Source: Zygnema circumcarinatum SAG 698-1b (taxonomy: Eukaryota > Plantae > Zygnematophyceae). From it: a stretch of 64,000 nucleotides of DNA. The position numbers were made by a program, and so were the translations under genes. The DNA is taken from the NCBI GenBank assembly GCA_037447605.1, contig CM074806.1, forward strand, positions 434,001-498,000, given 5' to 3'. Shown one piece after another: positions 1 to 13,922 of this stretch. The notes under the pieces were generated by a model. It was not told the origin of the DNA. It ran no database searches and was given only the letters and a program-made list of their open reading frames with translations. How positions within the stretch are numbered: position 1 is the first letter of the stretch; the number at the start of each line of letters is the position of its first letter.

Positions 1-745
1 AAGCTCAACGGCCTTTTCCATGTCCTTGGGGACTCCATCTCCGTTCTGGTAGCACCAACCTAAATTGAACTGGGCCGCAGAATGGCCCTTCTCTGCAGCG
101 CGCCTATAAAGCTCAACGGCCTTTTCCATGTCCTTGGGGACTCCATCTCCGTTCTGGTAGCACCAACCTAAATTGAACTGGGCCGCAGAATGGCCCTTCT
201 CTGCAGCGCGCCTAAAAAGCTCAACGGCCTTTTCCATGTCCTTGGGGACTCCATCTCCGTACATGTAGCACCAACCTAAATTGTTCTGGGCCGCAGAATG
301 GCCCTTCTCTGCAGCGCGCCTAAACAGCTCAACGGCCTTTTCCATGTCCTTGGGGACTCCATCTCCGTTCTGGTAGCACAAACCTAAATTGTTCTGGGCC
401 GCAGAATGGCCCTTCTCTGCAGCGCGCCTAAACAGCTCAACGGCCTTTTCCATGTCCTTGGGGACTCCATCTCCGTTCTGGTAGCACAAACCTAAATTGC
501 TCTGGGCCGCAGAATGGCCCTTCTCTGCAGCGCGCCTATAAAGCTCAACGGCCTTTTCCATGTCCTTGGGGACTCCATCTCCGTTATAGTAGCACCAACC
601 TAAATTGAACTGGGCCGCAGAATGGCCCTTCTCTGCAGCGCGCCTAAAAAGCTCAACGGCCTTTTCCATGTCCTTGGGGACTCCATCTCCGTTATAGTAG
701 CACATACCTAAAGTGTACTGCGCATCACTGTCTCCCTGATCCGCC
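1..745 (-). repeat. 108-bp coding tandem repeat (about 7 Sel1-like repeats in window)
   Basis: Units start at 1, 109, 217, 325, 433, 541 and 649. The period is 108 nt (36 codons) and the minus-strand frame is open throughout. Confidence 0.97.
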
Positions 746-2723
746 CTCATCCTTAATTCACTCACCATCTTCCGCTCCCTGTAAGGCGAATCTTCTACTT
801 CTTTTTTTTCAAGTGCAGGCGTTTGTGCTGATCCTGCTGAATCCGGTTGCTTTCCCTTCTTTGCATCCTCCGCTGCTTTTTGCAACCGAGGCAGCACATC
901 GCTCTCAAGACTTGGGCGAAGAGACCTCTCCTCCGCCACGCACCGCAGTGCCACGTGGAGGGCTGCCTCTGTCGGCTCCCGCCCCCACGCCCCTGCCCGC
1001 GGGTCCAGCTTCTCCATGAAGACAGCTGCCGCCTTCTCCAAGTCGCGCTTGGACTGTTCTGCCCCGCCGCTCTCGAGGAGTTCATGGATGTTCTGAATCT
1101 TGGGGTCGCCCGTGAAGAGCTGCAACATGACGAGGCCGAGGGCGAACACGTCGGCAGTGCCTGTGAGCATTCCCGTTCGTGCCTCCGGTGCCATGTACCT
1201 GTAAGGAGGCAAAATGGGGGGGACTTTTGAAGAAATGAATAAATTCCATCGCTATAAAGCAGCAGAGGATGACGGGAAGGAGAACTGCTCAAGAGGCAAC
1301 AAAACAGATTGGATTATGACGTACGGGAGAGTGCCTTTCAAACGGTCTGTTTGGATTGTGGCATCATAAAACAATTCTGCCAGGCCCATGTCCGCCAGCT
1401 TTGAGGTGAGGTTCACGTCCAATAGCACGTTCGCCGGCTTCAAGTCACAGTGGATGATACTTTGCTTGTGCATGAACAGAAGAGCTTTCGCCATCTCGGC
1501 ACATATCCGGATGCGGTCCGCCCAACCAAGGGGGGGGTACTTGGCAACAGGACCTTTCAGGCGGTCCTTGAGGCTCCCTCCGCTCATGAGCTCGCTCACA
1601 AAGCAGCGCGCTTCGGGGCTCCATTTCATGAACTGCACAATGTGGGGATGGTGCAGCCCTTTTAAAGCTTCCACCTCCTTCTCAAATTCCTCCAGGGGAC
1701 TGCCCTCATGCAGCCTCTTTACCGCCACAGGGGTGCCGTACAGCATGCCTTTGTAGACCGATCCAAAGGCTCCATTTCCAAGCAGGTTTTTTTCGGAGAA
1801 GTTGTCGGTGATGTCCGCCATTAGGCTTCCGGGAAGGGTGTCAGAAAGTGCCATTGCTCTGCGGAATCGCTTCTCATCCAGTTTTGTCCCTTTGGCAGCG
1901 ATAAGTTCAATAGTTATTTGAATGCTTTGCTCCTCTTGTGGACGATTGTCAGATACAGCACGTTCCTTCTCCTCCTTCAACTCCTCCACGAACGTTTCGA
2001 CCTGCGTGAGGATATGCCATGCATGAGGATCGCTTAAGAATGTCGATCAAGGAGTGTGTGATACCTCGACATCACACGTAGCCATAGGCCAATCATGCAC
2101 GCAAACATGCTGCAACTCCTGCTGCCAAGAAGTCATGCGGAATTCAAGCCCTATGCGCTCGAAACCAAGACAAAGCAATCTCCGCAAAAGAGAGCGCCTC
2201 CCACCTCCTCCTGCGTGACCTTCCCCTCCTCCAGAAGGCGGCTCACAAGCACCTTCACCGACTCCGGCTTGTCGACCGTCGCCCCCCCCAACCGCGCGGC
2301 ATTTTGCGCCCTCTCCTCCTCCTCCGCCTCCTGCACTGCTCTCAACCCGTCATCCTTCAACTCCTGCTCCCGCTGATCTTTATTCAGCTTTCGCAAAATC
2401 AGGAAGTCCAGCTCCCAATGCGTTATGTAGACATGGATCTCCTTTATGTCATCGGAGATCTGCTGGTAGTAGAGCAGGCGGTAGAGCACGCTCCACGTGC
2501 AGCGCTTGGCTAGTTTTTCGGCGGAGTGCACGTGCTTCAGTAGCTGCTGCAGGACCTTCTTCTCCGGCAGGGGGGCCCTCTCCGCTATGCGCTTCTCCAG
2601 GAGGGAGGAAAGGTTCTCCACGCGCTGGCAGAGGAGGTCGCCCAGTTTTCGGTGTGACTTTACAGTGTCCCACACGGTCCGCAGGGCGATTACCGCATCG
2701 ACAACTGATTTCACCATGTCCAT
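1..2723 (-). CDS. MLKL-like N-terminal 4-helix-bundle + non-RD RLK/Pelle kinase + Sel1-repeat protein (3' end beyond window start)
   Basis: Exons 2205-2723, 1325-2001 and <1-1198 join in frame at GT-AG sites (TQEE|VETF; KGTLP|YMAPE). Exon 1 resembles the MLKL NTD (TVKSHRKLGDLLCQRVENLSSLLE...LYRLLYYQQISDDIKEI). Kinase motifs: LGNGAFGSVYKG, VAVK, HCDLKPAN, DMG, APE, DVFALG. The C-terminal 36-aa repeats (RRAAEKGHSAAQFNLGWCYQNGDGVPKDMEKAVEL) fit the Sel1 consensus. Confidence 0.9.
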
Positions 2724-3239
2724 CTGAGAGAGAGTGGGAGGGAGGGAGGGAGGGAGGGAGGGAGGAAGGGAGGGAGAGGGAGAGAGAGAGGGAGTTGCCT
2801 AAACGCTTTGGATGCTTCCTATTGGTTCTGGGTGGACAGGGATCCACGTTTTCTTCATATTAGTTTTAAGAGGGAGGGAGGGAGGGAGGGAGGGAGGGAG
2901 GGAGGCAGAGGGGGGGGAAGACGCGCATAGCAGCGAACGGCCGTGTCCTCGCCGCCCGGCCGCGGGCGGACTTACGCGGACCGTACAGGCGGGTACAAGT
3001 GGACAACAAGGCCGGACGCGGAACAAGATTGCCTTATGGTACGGACTTGTACATTCCCGAGGGCGGGCAAAAGTTGACCACTGCGCTCGCCACGTGGTCA
3101 CCGCCGATTGCCTGATGAAGTGGATGTCCCGTCACGTCACGTCACGTCCCGTCATGCTGTTGGGTGAGTCCTGCCAACGGATCCTCGACAGCCACGTGGC
3201 GGCGCGCGATTTGTCTACGCGGTCAAAGTTTTCTCAGTT

Positions 3240-3545
3240 CGGACCAGTGGATCGGCAACCATTGGACAACCATTGGATGGCAATGGTTGGACGTCTACTG
3301 GTTGGCAACCAGTCGACTGGTTGCCAACCAGTGGCATCCACTGGTTCCAAACCAGTCGAATGGTTGCCAACCAGTGGCATCCACTGGTTCCAAACCAGTC
3401 GAATGGTTGTCAACCAGTGGCATCCACTGGTTGGCAACCAGTCGAATGGTTGTTTCGGTCCGCAACCACTGGTTGGCAACCAGTCGACTGGTTTGGAACA
3501 AGTGGATGCCACTGGTTGGCAACCAGTCGAATGGTTGTTTCGATC
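3240..3545. repeat. Array of TGGTT-N3-AACCA palindromic boxes (same family as 48437-49762)
   Basis: Repeated TGGTTnnnAACCA boxes joined by GTCGA(C/A) and GTGGCATCCAC linkers. The leader GGATCGGCAACCATTGGACAACCATTGGATGGCAATGGTTGGACGTC recurs inverted at about 49360-49410. Confidence 0.9.
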
Positions 3546-4180
3546 CAGGGGGAGAGGGAGAGGGGGAGAGGGGAGAAGGGGGGGAGGGGGAACGGGGGGG
3601 GAGAGGGGGGTGAGGGGGAGGGGGAGGAAGAGGGGGAGAGAAGGACGAGAGGGACCGGGGGCGGAGAGGATGGGGAGAGGAAGGGTGAGGGGTGAAGGGA
3701 AAGAAAGGGGGGTTGGGAGGGGAAGAGGGAGGGGGTGAAGGGAGGAAAACGGTGGGGGAGCGGGGCGCGAGGAGAAGGGGAAAGGGAGAATGGGAGAGGG
3801 AGGGAAGGGAGGGGGGGCAGCAAGAAGGAAGGAGACAATGAGAGGGAGAAGAGTGACAGAGGAGGGGGAGGAAGAGTGGGGGGGGTGGAAGGAGGGGGAA
3901 AGAGGGAACGGGGAATGAAGGGGGAGGGGGGAGTCTAAAGGTTGGGCGAAGGGGAAGAATTTGCGGAAGCAGGTGAGTGGAGGGGGCGATGGGGGGAAAG
4001 AAGCAGCCAAAATCCGGACGGACTGCCAAACGGATCAGCTGTCGGATCCCATCACAGAAGCTCCCACAAGCCCCACTTTGAAATTCTAAACCCTAACCCT
4101 AAAAACCTCAATCCCCTCCAGTGCCCTGAATCCTGACCCACTCCCCCCTTCCTTCCTCCTCCTCCTCCTCCTCCCTCGCA

Positions 4181-9136: not shown

Positions 9137-12100
9137 ATGCCGTCGCTGCGGCGCGCGCCTCTGGCGGACGCGCTGACGTGCGCGCTCTGCCGACGGCTCC
9201 TCCGTGACGCGACAACTGTCACGGAGTGCCTGCACACGTGTATGGCCCTCGGCTCAGGGCTCGGGGTTAGGATTTTGGGAGTTAGGGTTTCAAGTGCGGG
9301 GTTTATGTTTAGGTTTCAGAGGTCAGGGTTGAGAGCTTTCGATTCAGGGTTAAAGTTAGGGTTAGGGTTTAGGGTTCAGGGTTAGGGTTAGGGTTAGGGT
9401 AGGGTTCAGGTTAAGGTTAGGGTTAGGGTTAGACTTAGGATTAGAGTTAGCGTAGGGTTAGGGATAGGGTGAGGGTTAGGGTTAGGGTGAGGGTTAGGGT
9501 TCAGGATCAGGGTTCAGGGTGCAGGGTTGAGGGTTAGGATTCAGGGTTAGGGTTAGGGTGCAAGGTTGAGGCTTGGGGTTCAGGGTTAGAGTTCAGGGTG
9601 AGGGTTAGGATTGGGATTCAGGGTTAGGGTTAGGGTTAGGGTTAAGGTGAGGGTTCGGGTGCAAGGTGCAGGGTTCAGAGGTCAGGGTTTTGGGCTTTGG
9701 TTTAGGGTTTGACGGTCGAGGTTTCGGGCTTAGGCTTAGGGTCCCGAGTTAGGGTCAGGGTTAGGGTTCAGAGGTGGTCGGGTTTAGGGTTTTTGGTACA
9801 GAGTTTAGGGTGTCGGCTTAGGGTTGAGGATTCAAAAGCTTACAATTTAGGATTGATGGTTGTGGGTTTAGAACTGAGGGTGGACGGGCTCAGAATTAGG
9901 GTTCAGAGTTTGGGATTTGATGTTTGAATTTTACAAGTCCCGCTCCAATCGCCTCTCTTTCTTCCTGTCTCTCTCCCTCTACTTCCTCCCTCCCTCCCTC
10001 CCTCGCCCTCCTCCCTCTTCCCCCCGGCTTTCACCCGCTCTCTCTCAGTTCGTCTCTCCCCCTCTCTCGCTTACCTCTCTCGCCCTCTCCCCCTTTGTCA
10101 CAGCCTTCCCTTCCTCACCTTGCAAGCTCAGACTTTCATGAGGGTTTCAGATTTAAGCTCTCCCTTTCCACCTCCCACCTAATTCTTTCTATGTTTTTTC
10201 TATTTCCTCTGATTTTCAGTTTGCAGGAAATGTATTTTCAAGGAGCTTAAGGCGGCACAGCGCGGGAGATGCCCCTCCTGCTTAATCGATTTGGGGGTTA
10301 ATCCCACGGAAAAATTAAGGTAAGTTGAAATATTTACAGTATTAGCCCCCNNNNNNNNNNCCCCCCCCCCCCCCCCCCCCCCCTTCACTCTCCTCTCCTC
10401 CCCCTCCCACCCTTTTCTTTTTTTTTGTTTTGTCGTTTTTTTGGAGACTGGATCGATTGACTACCTTTTCGTTTTTTTTTTCTTTCTTTTTTTTTTTTTT
10501 TAACAGGAGCGATTATCAGCTTTCGGAGCTTCGAAATAAAATTTTTCCGTCGAAGAGCAAAGAGGCTCCTCGTGACGCATTCCTGGAGAGTATCGTGGAA
10601 GCTTCCGGGAACCTTCCGGGAGAGCCTGCAAAGAAGAAGGCGAAAAAATCGCATCCGGAGAAAGAAGGAGGAGTCACTGTTCGATCTCTCTCAGAAAAAA
10701 GAGAAGAAAATGAAATTTTCACTAAACAGTCTCTCATCTGTGAAGAACCGATGCTTGATGCGGACTATGATGATGAGGTTCAGGAAAGAGGAGAGGGGCT
10801 GGAGGAGGGAGAGAGAGAGCGCTCAGAGAAGGTGGAAGAAGTGAAGAAAGAAGAAATTAAGGAAGAAATTAAAGAAGATGAAATAGCTAACGATTTAGAA
10901 AAGGCAACCAGGGAAAGTGATGATGGGGTTTGTGAAGAAGATGGGAACGGTCTACCCATTGTACTTGCTCTAGAGGCACATATTTCTGGAACTGAACATG
11001 GAGGGGGGGAAGGAGGAGCAGAGGTAGAGGTAATGGAAGAGGAAGTGGGTGGGGAAGGGGGAGGCGGAAGGGCAGGAGTGGGAGAAGGAGCGGGAGGAAC
11101 AGTGGGAGTCGTGGAGGGAGACGAAGTGGGAGATGCAATGGGAGAGAGAGTTGGAGAGGGAGCAGGAAAAGACAACGAAACATCCCCTCGGAAGGATGAA
11201 CTTCAGAAGGTGGAGAGTAATTCTCCTTCCGGAAACGAGGTTTTAACTCCTCCTGAGATTTCTTCTCAAGTTCCAAATCAACCAGATTTTGCTCAAAACG
11301 CAGAAAATTCGGCTATCTCCAAAGCGCAAGTCGATCAAGCAGGGAGTTCTATGCCGTCGGCTGCAACGGAACGGACAACTGAAGCTTCGGATTCATCTTC
11401 TGTTCCACAAGGCGTGACTGTTTCCATCGACACCGTTAAGGACAACGGAACGGCGGAAAATCCGCAAGGATTTCCCCCTGTTCAGTGGAGCGGAAAAACG
11501 GAACCCCATTCTCCTATTGAAGACTCCAAAATTTCGATTCCGAACCTCATGTCTCAAGTAACGGATGCTGCCACTCCTTCACTTTCCGCTCCCACTACCG
11601 CCCTCAAACCGACTCCCACACTCTCTCCCACCCCCACTCACAAACCAACTCCTCCCAACCTCACTCCAACACCCACTCACACTCTCACTCCCACTGCCAC
11701 TCCCACTCCCATTCCCACTCCCACTCCCACTACCACTCCCACTGCCACTCCCACTACCACTCCCACTGCCACTGCCACTCCCACTGCCACTGCCACTCCA
11801 ACTCCCGCTCCCACTGCCACTCTCACTGCCACTCCCACGCTCATTCCCATTCGCACTCCCACTCCCATTTCCACTCTCAGAGCGACTCCTCTTACTCCAG
11901 CAGCTTCAGGAACTCCTCTCATACCCCCCCCAAACAACTCCACAAATATGAACAGACCAAGTAATGTCATTCCCAGTGCGAACGGTCTTTTTTCTCCAAA
12001 TGTTTCGTGGGTGAAACGGCCGCTCCATGTGCCGGGGGGGCTCGATCTCAGCCAATGGAAACCGCCCAAAACCCCTAATTTTCAGTTAAACGGAACGAGT

Positions 12101-13922
12101 TCTCGCACATCAGCATACCATCCGATGGGAAACTCACTTGCATTCGATCAGAATTTAGAGATGGGAGCTCCCTCTCTCCCTCCTCCTCCTTCTCCTTCTC
12201 CCTCTCTCTCTCCTTCTACCTCCTCTCCCGTGACTACCATGACAGTCTACAGTAGTTCCTCACCTTCCTTATTGGGAAGCTCTATGGGAGGAGGGAGAGG
12301 AGGAGGTCGCCTTGGAAATATGGGAATAATGAGAAGGGGAATACCGCAGAAAATTGGGGTTAAGAGGGGGCCGGGAGGGAAGCAAATGGATGCTACAAAA
12401 CCCCTTGCAAGTGGGAGTTATTCCATAGTTTTGAACTCAACGGGGTCCCCTCCTCAAGCAGCAGGAGAGAGACCCTCTCTCCCTCTAGCAATAGGGAGTC
12501 CACGGCCTCCCACATGGGTCTTACTCCAAACGGCAGAACATCCGTAAGTGGTTCTTTTCTCGGAAGGGATTTTGGTTTGTAGACCATCTCTCTCTTTAAG
12601 TGTCTGTGTGTTTTGTGCGTGAGTCACTGTTTTGTGTTTATTATCTATTTTTCGATTTTTTTATTTCTGTATGTAGGTCGAGAGGATATATGCTGATTTT
12701 TTGTGGTATTGCTTCTTTCTCCCTTTCTCCAGGCCTCCTGGAAAGGAGCTACCGGCTATGGACCGCCCTTATCTTCGAATACGGTACACACAACAATCCT
12801 CTCTCCCTCCTCTCCTCTCTCCCTCTCTCTCCCCCCTCTAGTCAGAGTTGGCTAAGAGAACGCCTTTTGAAACCTGCAGAGATTTTGGAGTCACAATTGG
12901 AACTCTGCAGAAGCATGTCGAGCGCAAGTTCAACACCAAACCAGGGGAGGTAAGGAGAGACCCTACCCCTCCCCCCCGCCTCTCTCTCTCTCTCTCTCTC
13001 CTTTTCTCTCTCCGCATCGCCCATCTTCCTCTCCACCCTGGACATCCTTTCCACTATCTTCCATCTCCACTCCGTTCTTGCCTACCACTTTTCTCCCTCT
13101 CTAATTCCCTCCTCTCTACCTCCCTCAGTCCTCCCCTCCCTTCTCTGCTTCCCGCCCTCTCCATCCCCCTCTTTCCCCTCTTCCGTATGCCTCTCAATCT
13201 GACTCTCCCTCATACCACTTTCTCCCTTCACTCCCCCCTCCTCTCTCTCCATCCCCCACTTACTCCTCCCTCCCTCTCCTCCCCTCCTCTCCCGCATTGC
13301 ACCTCTTCTCCTCCCTCCCCCTCTTCCCCCTCCTCTCTCCCCCCTCCTTCTCCCTCCCCTCCTCTCCCTCCCCTTCTCCCTCCCTCCCTTCCCCTCTCCT
13401 CCCTCCCCTTCTCCCTCTCCCCTTTTCCCCCTTCCTCCCCTCTGCTCCTCTCCTCCCTTTCCCTCTCCCTCTCCCTCTTCCCTCCCTTTTCCCTCTCCCT
13501 CCCCTCCTCTCCCTCCCTCCTCTCCCCCCCTCCCTTCCCTTCTCCCCCCTCCCCTTCTCCCTGTCTCCTTTTCCCCCCTCCTCGCCTCTGCTCCTCTCCT
13601 CCCTTTCCCTCTCCCTCTTCCCTCCCCTTTCCCTCTCCCTCCCCTCCTCTCCCTCCCCTCCTCTCCCTCCCCTCCTCTCCCTCTCTCCCCCCCTCCCCCC
13701 TTCCCTCCCACCCCTCATTCCCTCCCTCCCTCTCCCCTCCCGCAGGTCCTCATCATGTGCCGCGACCGCGTGTTGGACCCCGCCTTCCCCCTCGCGGTGG
13801 TGCAGTCCGCGTGGCACTCCACGCAGCAGGCGGGGCAGTCAACGATGGTCAAAGGCTACCCCCCCCTAGCGGAGGGCAACCTCATGGAAGTCGTCCCTTT
13901 TCTCACCTATCAGAGGTCCTGA
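9137..13922 (+). CDS. BMI1: PRC1 RING-finger E3 ligase, BMI1/DRIP family (RING + RAWUL)
   Basis: Exons 9137-9239, 10220-10319, 10507-12543, 12733-about 12783, 12881-12949 and 13746-13922. RING: [21 protein letters not shown]|FCRKC...CPSC...NPTEKLR|[19 protein letters not shown]-like end: [12 protein letters not shown]|[17 protein letters not shown]...|VLIMCRDR...FLTYQRS*. Confidence 0.9.
9245..9910 (+). repeat. Degenerate telomere-like TTAGGG/TTTAGGG/TTCAGGG tract in BMI1 intron 1
   Basis: Dozens of GGGTTA/GGGTTTA/GGGTTCA units begin immediately after the donor site. Confidence 0.9.

Follow-up and report, generated by a model that had tools for sequence, protein, structure and literature searches.

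We describe a gene at the edge of a 64,000-nt stretch of Zygnema circumcarinatum DNA (hereafter the window) that encodes, on a single chain, a helical N-terminal region, a kinase with intact catalytic residues and an array of Sel1 repeats. The explanation that best fits these data overall, to which we assign a probability of roughly 0.45, is that the N-terminal region is a divergent bundle of the MLKL_N/MCAfunc/RPW8 class and that bundle, kinase and Sel1 array most likely operate according to the working model set out below. We infer that the gene belongs to a lineage-specific family in which bundle, kinase, U-box and Sel1 modules have been shuffled, and that it is an intact copy with its domains in the MLKL order.

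The gene lies on the minus strand, and both six-frame translation and the spliced coding sequence show three exons that join in frame into 2394 nt, or 798 codons with 0 stops. Exon 1 (2723-2205) begins with an ATG at 2723 and supplies 173 codons whose translation comprises the helical N-terminal domain and the first brace-like helices; a pyrimidine-rich (ccct/ctcc)n tract (2724..2905), probably the 5' UTR or promoter region, lies directly upstream of the ATG. Intron 1 (2204-2002) is a 203-nt GT..AG intron in phase 0. Exon 2 (2001-1325) carries the end of the brace, a linker and the kinase from its N-lobe through the activation loop, and is followed by intron 2 (1324-1199), which spans 126 nt from GTACGT to AG and splits the Pro codon within GTLP/YMAPE. 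Exon 3 (1198-1) holds the kinase C-lobe, a linker of ~40 aa and the Sel1 array. No stop codon is reached by base 1, the window edge; the encoded protein is at least 798 aa long, and its C-terminus falls outside the window. As the initial annotation observed, the open reading frame track lacks this last exon, because exon 3 runs off the edge of the window and such frames are not listed. A tblastn search with the full protein as the query found no second copy of the gene in the 64,000 nt of the window.

Contigs from public runs confirm that transcripts join the exons as the initial annotation had predicted, each junction having been seen. The intron 2 junction is present in record 4 of run X2 (with sides of 229 and 125 nt) and also in run X4, the joint falling at 1194/1321 (cut +4) with 126 nt skipped in both runs. 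Record 9 of run X2 crosses intron 1 with a 376-nt side and an 18-nt side and no mismatch; its joint connects 2203 with 1999 and is ambiguous by 2 nt, as both sides read "gt," and the donor that it uses is the GT at 2204. A GTGAGC at 2246 was considered as an alternative donor and rejected, since the contig uses the other one. Loose contig ends occur at 2003 in four runs; those in X3 and X4 reveal a paralogue or allele that shares this splice site. Public-run contigs also cover the span 2203-2722 of exon 1, and some contigs are unspliced across exon/intron boundaries. The hydropathy scan lends no support to a signal peptide or a membrane span: its highest 19-residue value is 1.64 and lies inside the kinase, and the protein has no transmembrane segment. 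The gene is real, transcribed and correctly spliced, with three exons that code for a soluble multidomain protein.

The kinase domain (residues ~237-505; 880..1812, minus strand, split by intron 2) was delimited by a motif scan, by alignment with Pto and by Pfam, which matches Pkinase on exon 2 at 2.1e-28; the C-lobe continues on exon 3. The initial annotation had called a kinase with intact VAVK, HxD and DxG residues, and the motif scan bears this out, placing GNGAFG at 248, VAVK at 265-268, HCDLKPAN at 357, DMG at 377, APE at 402 and DVFALG at 415. All of the catalytic motifs are present, including the alpha-C Glu. K268 is encoded by codon 1719-1717 and the catalytic D359 by codon 1446-1444; the kinase is non-RD (HCD), and DMG replaces DFG. 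Its Pkinase fold is closest to those of Pto, IRAK and RLK kinases, the closest solved structures being Pto (7e-28), IRAK1, a LysM receptor kinase, BAK1 and IRAK4, which places it in the RLK/Pelle (IRAK) group. Among named proteins, its nearest relatives are kinases of plants and green algae annotated as "U-box domain-containing protein 34" (46% identity for a Monoraphidium protein and 41% for a Hibiscus protein). The closest match without a plant name (P0002) shares 49% identity and also reads DMG; it comes from another organism, on a 2.9-kb contig of 40% GC that holds neither a bundle nor a Sel1 exon. The kinase C-lobe and linker, used as the sole query, returned no match. Judged by these motifs and relatives, the kinase is of the RLK/Pelle (IRAK) type, belongs to the plant U-box-kinase lineage and retains its catalytic residues.

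The Sel1 array occupies 1..768 on the minus strand. Pfam matches Sel1 (PF08238) at 1.7e-97 in 7 stretches, with full-length profile matches (1-36 of 36), which agrees with the earlier count of at least 7 repeats; by direct count, the window holds 6 full 36-aa units (108 nt each) and a partial unit at both ends. TRF reports a period of 108 with 6.7 copies and 96% matches. The units differ from one another at 1-9 nt and are 92-99% identical at the DNA level. Of the 12 nucleotide columns that vary in the 108-nt unit, 10 are non-synonymous and 9 fall in codons 3-11, the variation being concentrated in codons 3, 4, 7, 10, 11 and 26. Such clustered variation would fit a putative binding surface.

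The homogeneity of these repeats can also be read less generously. The gene could belong to a high-copy family associated with transposons and be a young copy adrift, transcribed without any maintained function, with the likeness among Sel1 units reflecting recent unequal crossing-over and nothing more. The 92-99% identity of the repeats and the introns retained in some contigs are in keeping with such a scenario, but a drifting copy sits poorly with 798 codons in three exons free of stops and frameshifts, with a full complement of intact kinase motifs and with two precisely spliced introns. We regard it as very improbable.

Conventional searches with the helical N-terminus, ~190 aa that precede the kinase, returned no relative. 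Pfam, run on three cuts of the domain at E<=1 and E<=10, gave no significant match, to MLKL_N (PF22215) or otherwise; its sole matches, Death_2 (0.086) and DUF7032 (0.24), are not significant. There were 0 matches at E<=10 among PDB sequences, 0 by phmmer against 1.84 billion cluster representatives and 0 in a word-indexed search at E<=10 of proteins of 95-300 aa. Metagenome contigs yielded no relative, and an exact look-up of the 190-aa read-through open reading frame found no match. None of the profile and sequence methods that we used connected the N-terminal region with MLKL_N, MCAfunc, RPW8 or HeLo. The MLKL fragment that the initial annotation had quoted for comparison is genuine: it is the helix at residues 20-43 of human MLKL, 9 of whose 24 residues are identical to the N-terminal segment at the same offset.

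The protein-language-model search of the Atlas did return matches. The 173-aa query scored 0.94 with 201 shared features and residues 1-112 scored 0.94 with 192; by the tool's own statement, 4-10 in 100 shuffled proteins reach 0.9, and counts of 170 or more shared features typify genuine family members and seldom arise in chance matches. With both queries, the ten best matches that carry a Pfam family all belong to one family or clan. Among the matches listed, scores of 0.90 or more belong to Streptophyta clusters of MLKL_N/MCAfunc/DUF7792/RPW8; PUB10_N and PUB2_N clusters also appear, at 0.84-0.86. The Atlas recognition value was 2665, over the 2300 mark.

Structure predictions are consistent with this class, with low confidence. 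The AF2 models show four antiparallel helices followed by long helices at a pLDDT of 60-63, values that are low because no relatives were found and these single-sequence AlphaFold runs hence had no alignment. Residues 1-112 (2388..2723, minus strand) are predicted, from these models and the Atlas features, to form a four-helix bundle with helices at 2-21, 28-47, 52-74 and 77-85/91-112. Residues 113-195 (1936..2387, minus strand, interrupted by intron 1) form two brace-like helices in the predicted secondary structure, at 113-146 and 153-190, which lie between bundle and kinase and are modelled with mixed confidence. The bundle has a net charge of +5, and the brace is acidic, with a net charge of -9. 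MLKL was never among the matches from Foldseek on the PDB or the VIA wide search. In these and in the Atlas fold search, all of which were queried with low-confidence models, the matches were generic four-helix bundles, except for one in the Atlas search with the 173-aa model; that model aligned with a 673-aa kinase cluster at a TM of 0.61 over residues 1-152, which is possibly meaningful. One Atlas shape match of the bundle, to the N-terminal part of a cluster of ascomycete NACHT proteins (TM 0.80), is no better than its matches to bacterial sensor bundles. The combination of AlphaFold and Foldseek proposed earlier as a check came out divided, in that a four-helix bundle was modelled (pLDDT 60-63) but only generic bundles matched it.

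The blank sequence and profile searches, the generic bundle matches from low-confidence models and the ability of shuffled sequences to reach an Atlas score of 0.9 would all be expected if the N-terminus were a helical or coiled-coil stretch peculiar to this lineage and unrelated to MLKL_N, which it would then resemble through an artefact of composition and helix pattern, and the gene simply a kinase-Sel1 protein with an orphan N-terminus. Against this stand the agreement of both Atlas queries on one clan for their ten best family-bearing matches, with 192-201 shared features, a recognition value above the 2300 mark, and a number, length and placement of helices relative to the kinase that match those of MLKL. 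We consider an unrelated region unlikely. The earlier description of an MLKL-like four-helix bundle survives in part: the Atlas score of 0.94, the MLKL-like helix lengths and the brace-like helices argue for it, but the profile and sequence searches are blank, the fold matches are generic and the pLDDT is only 60-63. Our preferred reading of the bundle, based on the language-model features and the models, is that it may be a very divergent member of the MLKL_N/MCAfunc/RPW8 helical-bundle class.

Plant U-box ligases have non-lethal interaction domains that belong to this helical-bundle class too, and the kinase comes from the lineage of those ligases. The protein could be a signalling kinase or a scaffold of ordinary kind that derives from the plant U-box-kinase lineage, with a UND/DUF7792/PUB_N-type bundle for interaction or regulation like that of plant U-box E3 ligases, Sel1 repeats that serve as a scaffold or in autoinhibition like the TPRs of BSK kinases, and no membrane-damaging or receptor function. 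The "U-box domain-containing protein 34" annotation of the closest named kinases, the DUF7792, PUB10_N and PUB2_N clusters among the Atlas matches of the N-terminus and the nearest Atlas cluster of the exon 3 piece, a kinase with TPR_BSK1_C (0.82, below the tool's threshold for a lead), all point in this direction. Several observations point away from it: Pfam finds no U-box in the three exon pieces, which make up the 798 aa within the window; the top Atlas matches are to MLKL_N/MCAfunc and not to PUB_N (0.94 versus 0.84-0.86); bundle, brace and kinase follow one another in the MLKL order, starting with the bundle at the very N-terminus; and near-identical repeats with clustered variable codons resemble a diversifying binding surface rather than a fixed scaffold. 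We hold this account to be possible, if somewhat doubtful.

Under the preferred reading, a divergent MLKL_N/MCAfunc/RPW8-class bundle joined to a kinase with intact catalytic residues and a Sel1 array, the protein would work as follows. The variable positions of the Sel1 array would bind a ligand, whether protein or not, and the array would restrain or position the kinase. Activation of the kinase, probably by auto- or trans-phosphorylation, would alter the packing of the brace on the basic N-terminal bundle, and the freed bundle might then oligomerize or move to membranes to produce a stress or immune-type output. This output could be membrane damage, or signalling and relocalization only. 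A cell-killing, immune or sensor-kinase-executioner role, such as the initial annotation proposed, may be envisaged for the gene product. A bolder version of this scheme would make the protein a one-chain necroptosis-like pathway of a green-lineage alga, in which hypervariable Sel1 repeats recognize a non-self or danger ligand, an active non-RD kinase plays in cis the part of RIPK3, which acts in trans on MLKL, and an MLKL-type four-helix bundle permeabilizes the membrane; the gene would then be the intact prototype of a diversifying, NLR-independent receptor family. This version strikes us as decidedly improbable.

Comparison with known systems places the gene beside, rather than within, the MLKL family. 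MLKL has the order of bundle, brace and kinase that is predicted here, beginning with the bundle at the extreme N-terminus; the predicted bundle and brace are of similar length, the bundle is basic in both, and the N-terminus described here matches MLKL_N clusters by its language-model features. MLKLs, however, are pseudokinases that lack the residues for phosphoryl transfer, whereas the kinase here keeps all of its catalytic residues, and the serine-rich C-terminal extension of plant MLKL is replaced here by the Sel1 array. The plant MLKLs (AtMLKL1-3), pseudokinases with a serine-rich C-terminus, have been described across seed plants (bioRxiv 10.1101/681015). By its sequence, the gene is not a member of the MLKL family, being a non-pseudokinase with a Sel1 tail in place of the serine-rich region. 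In the catalytic loop, the plant U-box kinases of the PUB34 type have the same DLKPAN motif, and like the kinase here they read D[VM]G in place of DFG. A U-box C-terminal to the kinase would be expected in that group, whereas a bundle and a Sel1 array accompany the non-RD (HCD) kinase here, and Pfam finds no U-box in the 798 aa within the window. The BSK kinases likewise set TPR-class repeats behind a cytosolic RLK/Pelle-type kinase, as in the kinase-Sel1 arrangement of this gene, but their TPRs number 3, and they lack both an N-terminal bundle and an array of near-identical repeats.

If the bundle is truly a relative of MLKL_N, the gene would be a tractable case in which to ask whether phosphorylation can control a killing bundle in cis, and it would bear on the assembly of cell-death or immune modules in the green lineage, whether ahead of NLRs or alongside them. 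If the bundle is only an interaction domain of the U-box-ligase type, the gene amounts to a curiosity within a shuffled family peculiar to this lineage. No NB-ARC or NACHT NTPase was matched by Pfam in the three exon pieces, so the protein does not class as an NLR or STAND protein. In Glomeromycota fungi, kinase and Sel1-like domains occur fused within single proteins. The expanded fungal families of kinases and Sel1-like proteins are high copy, lineage specific and proposed to function in environmental perception, albeit in a different kingdom. Fungal HeLo/HELL proteins and NLRs combine an N-terminal helical killing domain with a homogenized repeat sensor that varies at few positions; the logic is similar, but here a kinase takes the middle position. 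The literature searches returned no account of an N-terminal MLKL-class bundle, a catalytically intact kinase and a homogenized Sel1 array whose variable codons are clustered, all on one chain, in agreement with the earlier statement that this architecture is undescribed in green plants. Taken singly, MLKL-type bundles, RLK/Pelle kinases and Sel1/TPR sensors are familiar; their putative combination on one chain is new to the literature that we searched.

The three-exon gene read from the sequence by the initial annotation is real: its exons join in frame, and contigs from public sequencing runs carry both junctions. On the minus strand, exon 1 (2723-2205, with an ATG at 2723), exon 2 (2001-1325) and exon 3 (1198-1, with a frame open up to the window edge) give a spliced coding sequence of 2394 nt within the window, and joining them in minus-strand translation yields 798 codons with 0 stops. 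The exons are separated by intron 1 (2204-2002, 203 nt, GT..AG, phase 0) and intron 2 (1324-1199, 126 nt, GTACGT..AG), the latter dividing the Pro codon of GTLP/YMAPE. The last exon is absent from the ORF track, as had been remarked, because the ORF listing leaves out ORFs that run off the source. The gene model starts at the ATG, the tract upstream of which is masked as repeat. A tandem array at 3297-3546 (period 43/85 nt) of palindrome-like ACTGGTTGGCAACCAGT units, with open frames on both strands, is flanked by purine microsatellites of the GGGA/GAGG type (2736-2905 and 3547-3880).

Seven runs from three studies of a single organism carry parts of the stretch, and we aligned four of them to 700-2900. 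Removal of intron 2 is recorded by a 354-nt contig (run X2, record 4) in which 1194 adjoins 1321 (the cut being ambiguous by +4), exactly the predicted loss of 1199-1324, and the identical joint occurs in run X4. Removal of intron 1 is recorded by a 394-nt contig (X2, record 9) that runs from 2578 to 2203 and then from 1999 to 1982 with 0 mismatches, which is the predicted loss of 2002-2204 with a 2-base ambiguity, 'gt' lying on both sides. This evidence consists of contigs and bears on the junctions rather than on expression level or a single full-length molecule. The copy at this locus is intact across 798 codons, with splicing as predicted. A second transcript, aligned at 1880-2003, differs from the kinase exon at 2 of 124 nt and has the acceptor of intron 1 in common with the gene. 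Loose ends occur at 2003 in all four aligned runs, and 4 of the 26 loose letters there in X3 and X4 differ from the exon-1 end of the gene; the second transcript is therefore an expressed paralogue or divergent allele spliced at the same intron-1 junction. Unspliced contigs (records 15, 19, 21 and 22, at 1974-2346 and 1267-1350) span exon/intron boundaries without mismatch and may stem from pre-mRNA, from carried-over DNA or from transcripts that keep an intron. Retention of intron 1 would bring a stop at 2151 and leave an ORF (2151-2723) for a hypothetical 190-aa isoform of bundle and brace without kinase. Within the kinase exon, short contigs of 35 to 47 nt at 1503-1536 and 1603-1649, with 1 or 2 mismatches, reach a word depth of 66 to 237, against ~10 elsewhere in the gene, a 20-fold excess that fits words common to many expressed paralogues.

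The kinase is intact, as had been claimed. Pfam scores Pkinase at 2.1e-28 on exon 2, the C-lobe lying on exon 3, and a motif scan with alignment to solved kinases finds all catalytic elements present: GNGAFG (residue 248), VAVK (Lys268), the alpha-C Glu, a non-RD HCDLKPAN (Asp359), DMG (residue 377), APE (residue 402) and DVFALG (residue 415). Relatives have DVG or DMG at the position of its DMG. Judged by its own motifs, the kinase is likely to be able to phosphorylate. Pto, IRAK1, a LysM receptor kinase, BAK1 and IRAK4 come nearest to it among solved structures, so we assign it to the RLK/Pelle family. The best database proteins, from Monoraphidium (46% identity) and Hibiscus (41%), are annotated "U-box domain-containing protein 34"; Xa21-like kinases come next. 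Pfam finds no U-box, NB-ARC or NACHT match in the three exons (798 aa within the window), so over this length the protein is not a U-box kinase. Hydropathy predicts no transmembrane segment, the top 19-residue value (1.64) lying within the kinase. A 2.9-kb contig from another organism's run (40% GC) carries at L001:2149-2925 a kinase exon that shares 49% identity with the one described here, with DMG instead of DFG as here, yet of the RD type; no bundle or Sel1 exon was seen on that contig.

The crucial question is the nature of the N-terminal domain, predicted to comprise a helical bundle (residues 1-112) and two brace-like helices (113-195), which had been likened to the four-helix domain of MLKL. 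We judge the odds at about two in three that it belongs to the MLKL_N/MCAfunc/RPW8 bundle class. An ESM-Atlas feature search groups it with Streptophyta clusters of MCAfunc, MLKL_N, DUF7792 and RPW8 type (score 0.94, 201 of 256 shared features, recognition 2665), and residues 1-112 alone with MLKL_N clusters (0.94, 192 shared features); by the tool's own calibration, genuine family members typically have at least 170 shared features and chance hits seldom do. Sequence searches, however, are blank: exon 1 has no Pfam match, three cuts of the domain bring up no relevant family when the cutoff is relaxed to E<=10, and there are 0 matches among PDB sequences at E<=10, by phmmer against 1.84 billion representatives, in a word-indexed search at E<=10 or among metagenome contigs. 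AlphaFold was consequently run on single sequences and modelled 173 aa at a pLDDT of 60 and residues 1-115 at 63. Helices at 2-21, 28-47, 52-74 and 77-85/91-112 are common to both models, the shorter forming an up-down four-helix bundle and the longer adding long helices reaching 146 and at 154-167; a shape search with the latter returned a 673-aa kinase cluster (TM 0.61 across residues 1-152). The MLKL fragment cited in the initial annotation is genuine human MLKL (residues 20-43 of the full-length chain), and the matching segment here, also residues 20-43, is identical at 9 of 24 positions, a suggestive agreement at equal offset that was chosen post hoc. The bundle is basic (net charge +5) and the brace acidic (-9). 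The main rival explanation takes the bundle for a U-box-ligase-type interaction domain, which would make the protein an ordinary signalling scaffold.

The Sel1 array, claimed to hold at least 7 repeats, was recovered by Pfam as seven stretches (1.7e-97), and we count 6 complete units of 36 aa within the window, with one partial unit at either end. Its period is 108 nt (96% matches), and units differ from one another at 1 to 9 of 108 nt. Ten of the 12 variable nucleotide columns per unit are non-synonymous, in codons 3, 4, 7, 10, 11 and 26, and 9 of the 12 lie in codons 3-11, corresponding to helix one of the repeat in the region of the conserved LG..Y..G. Such a distribution is consistent with concerted evolution in which variation is retained at a putative binding face, a role suggested by TPR/SLR structures in general. 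The array may bind a partner via its variable positions; by analogy with MLKL, phosphorylation or partner binding would free the brace-held bundle, whose output could be membrane damage or signalling. Elsewhere in the window, the ten ORFs that were scanned, a 705-aa frame at 10430-12547 (+) and nine of 246 to 394 aa, have no Pfam match at E<=0.001.

The earlier interpretation of the gene is partly supported. The gene has an unusual architecture that lends itself to testing; its key domain, the bundle, is an orphan of putative function. A literature search returned nothing combining Sel1, kinase and streptophyte algae, and for Sel1, kinase and MLKL the titles and abstracts of the matches listed describe no such protein. 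NLRtracker-type surveys found MLKL-like proteins in all plants tested, two streptophyte algae included (PMC11218826), and kinase and Sel1-like families are expanded in Rhizophagus (PMC8647823). Its bundle-brace-kinase order is that of MLKL, and membership of the MLKL family in the strict sense is ruled out by the intact kinase and a Sel1 tail that is not serine-rich. In animal and plant MLKLs alike the kinase-like domain is a pseudokinase, whereas the Zygnema kinase is intact, and in the position of the serine-rich C-terminus of plant MLKLs (10.1101/681015) the Zygnema gene has its Sel1 array.
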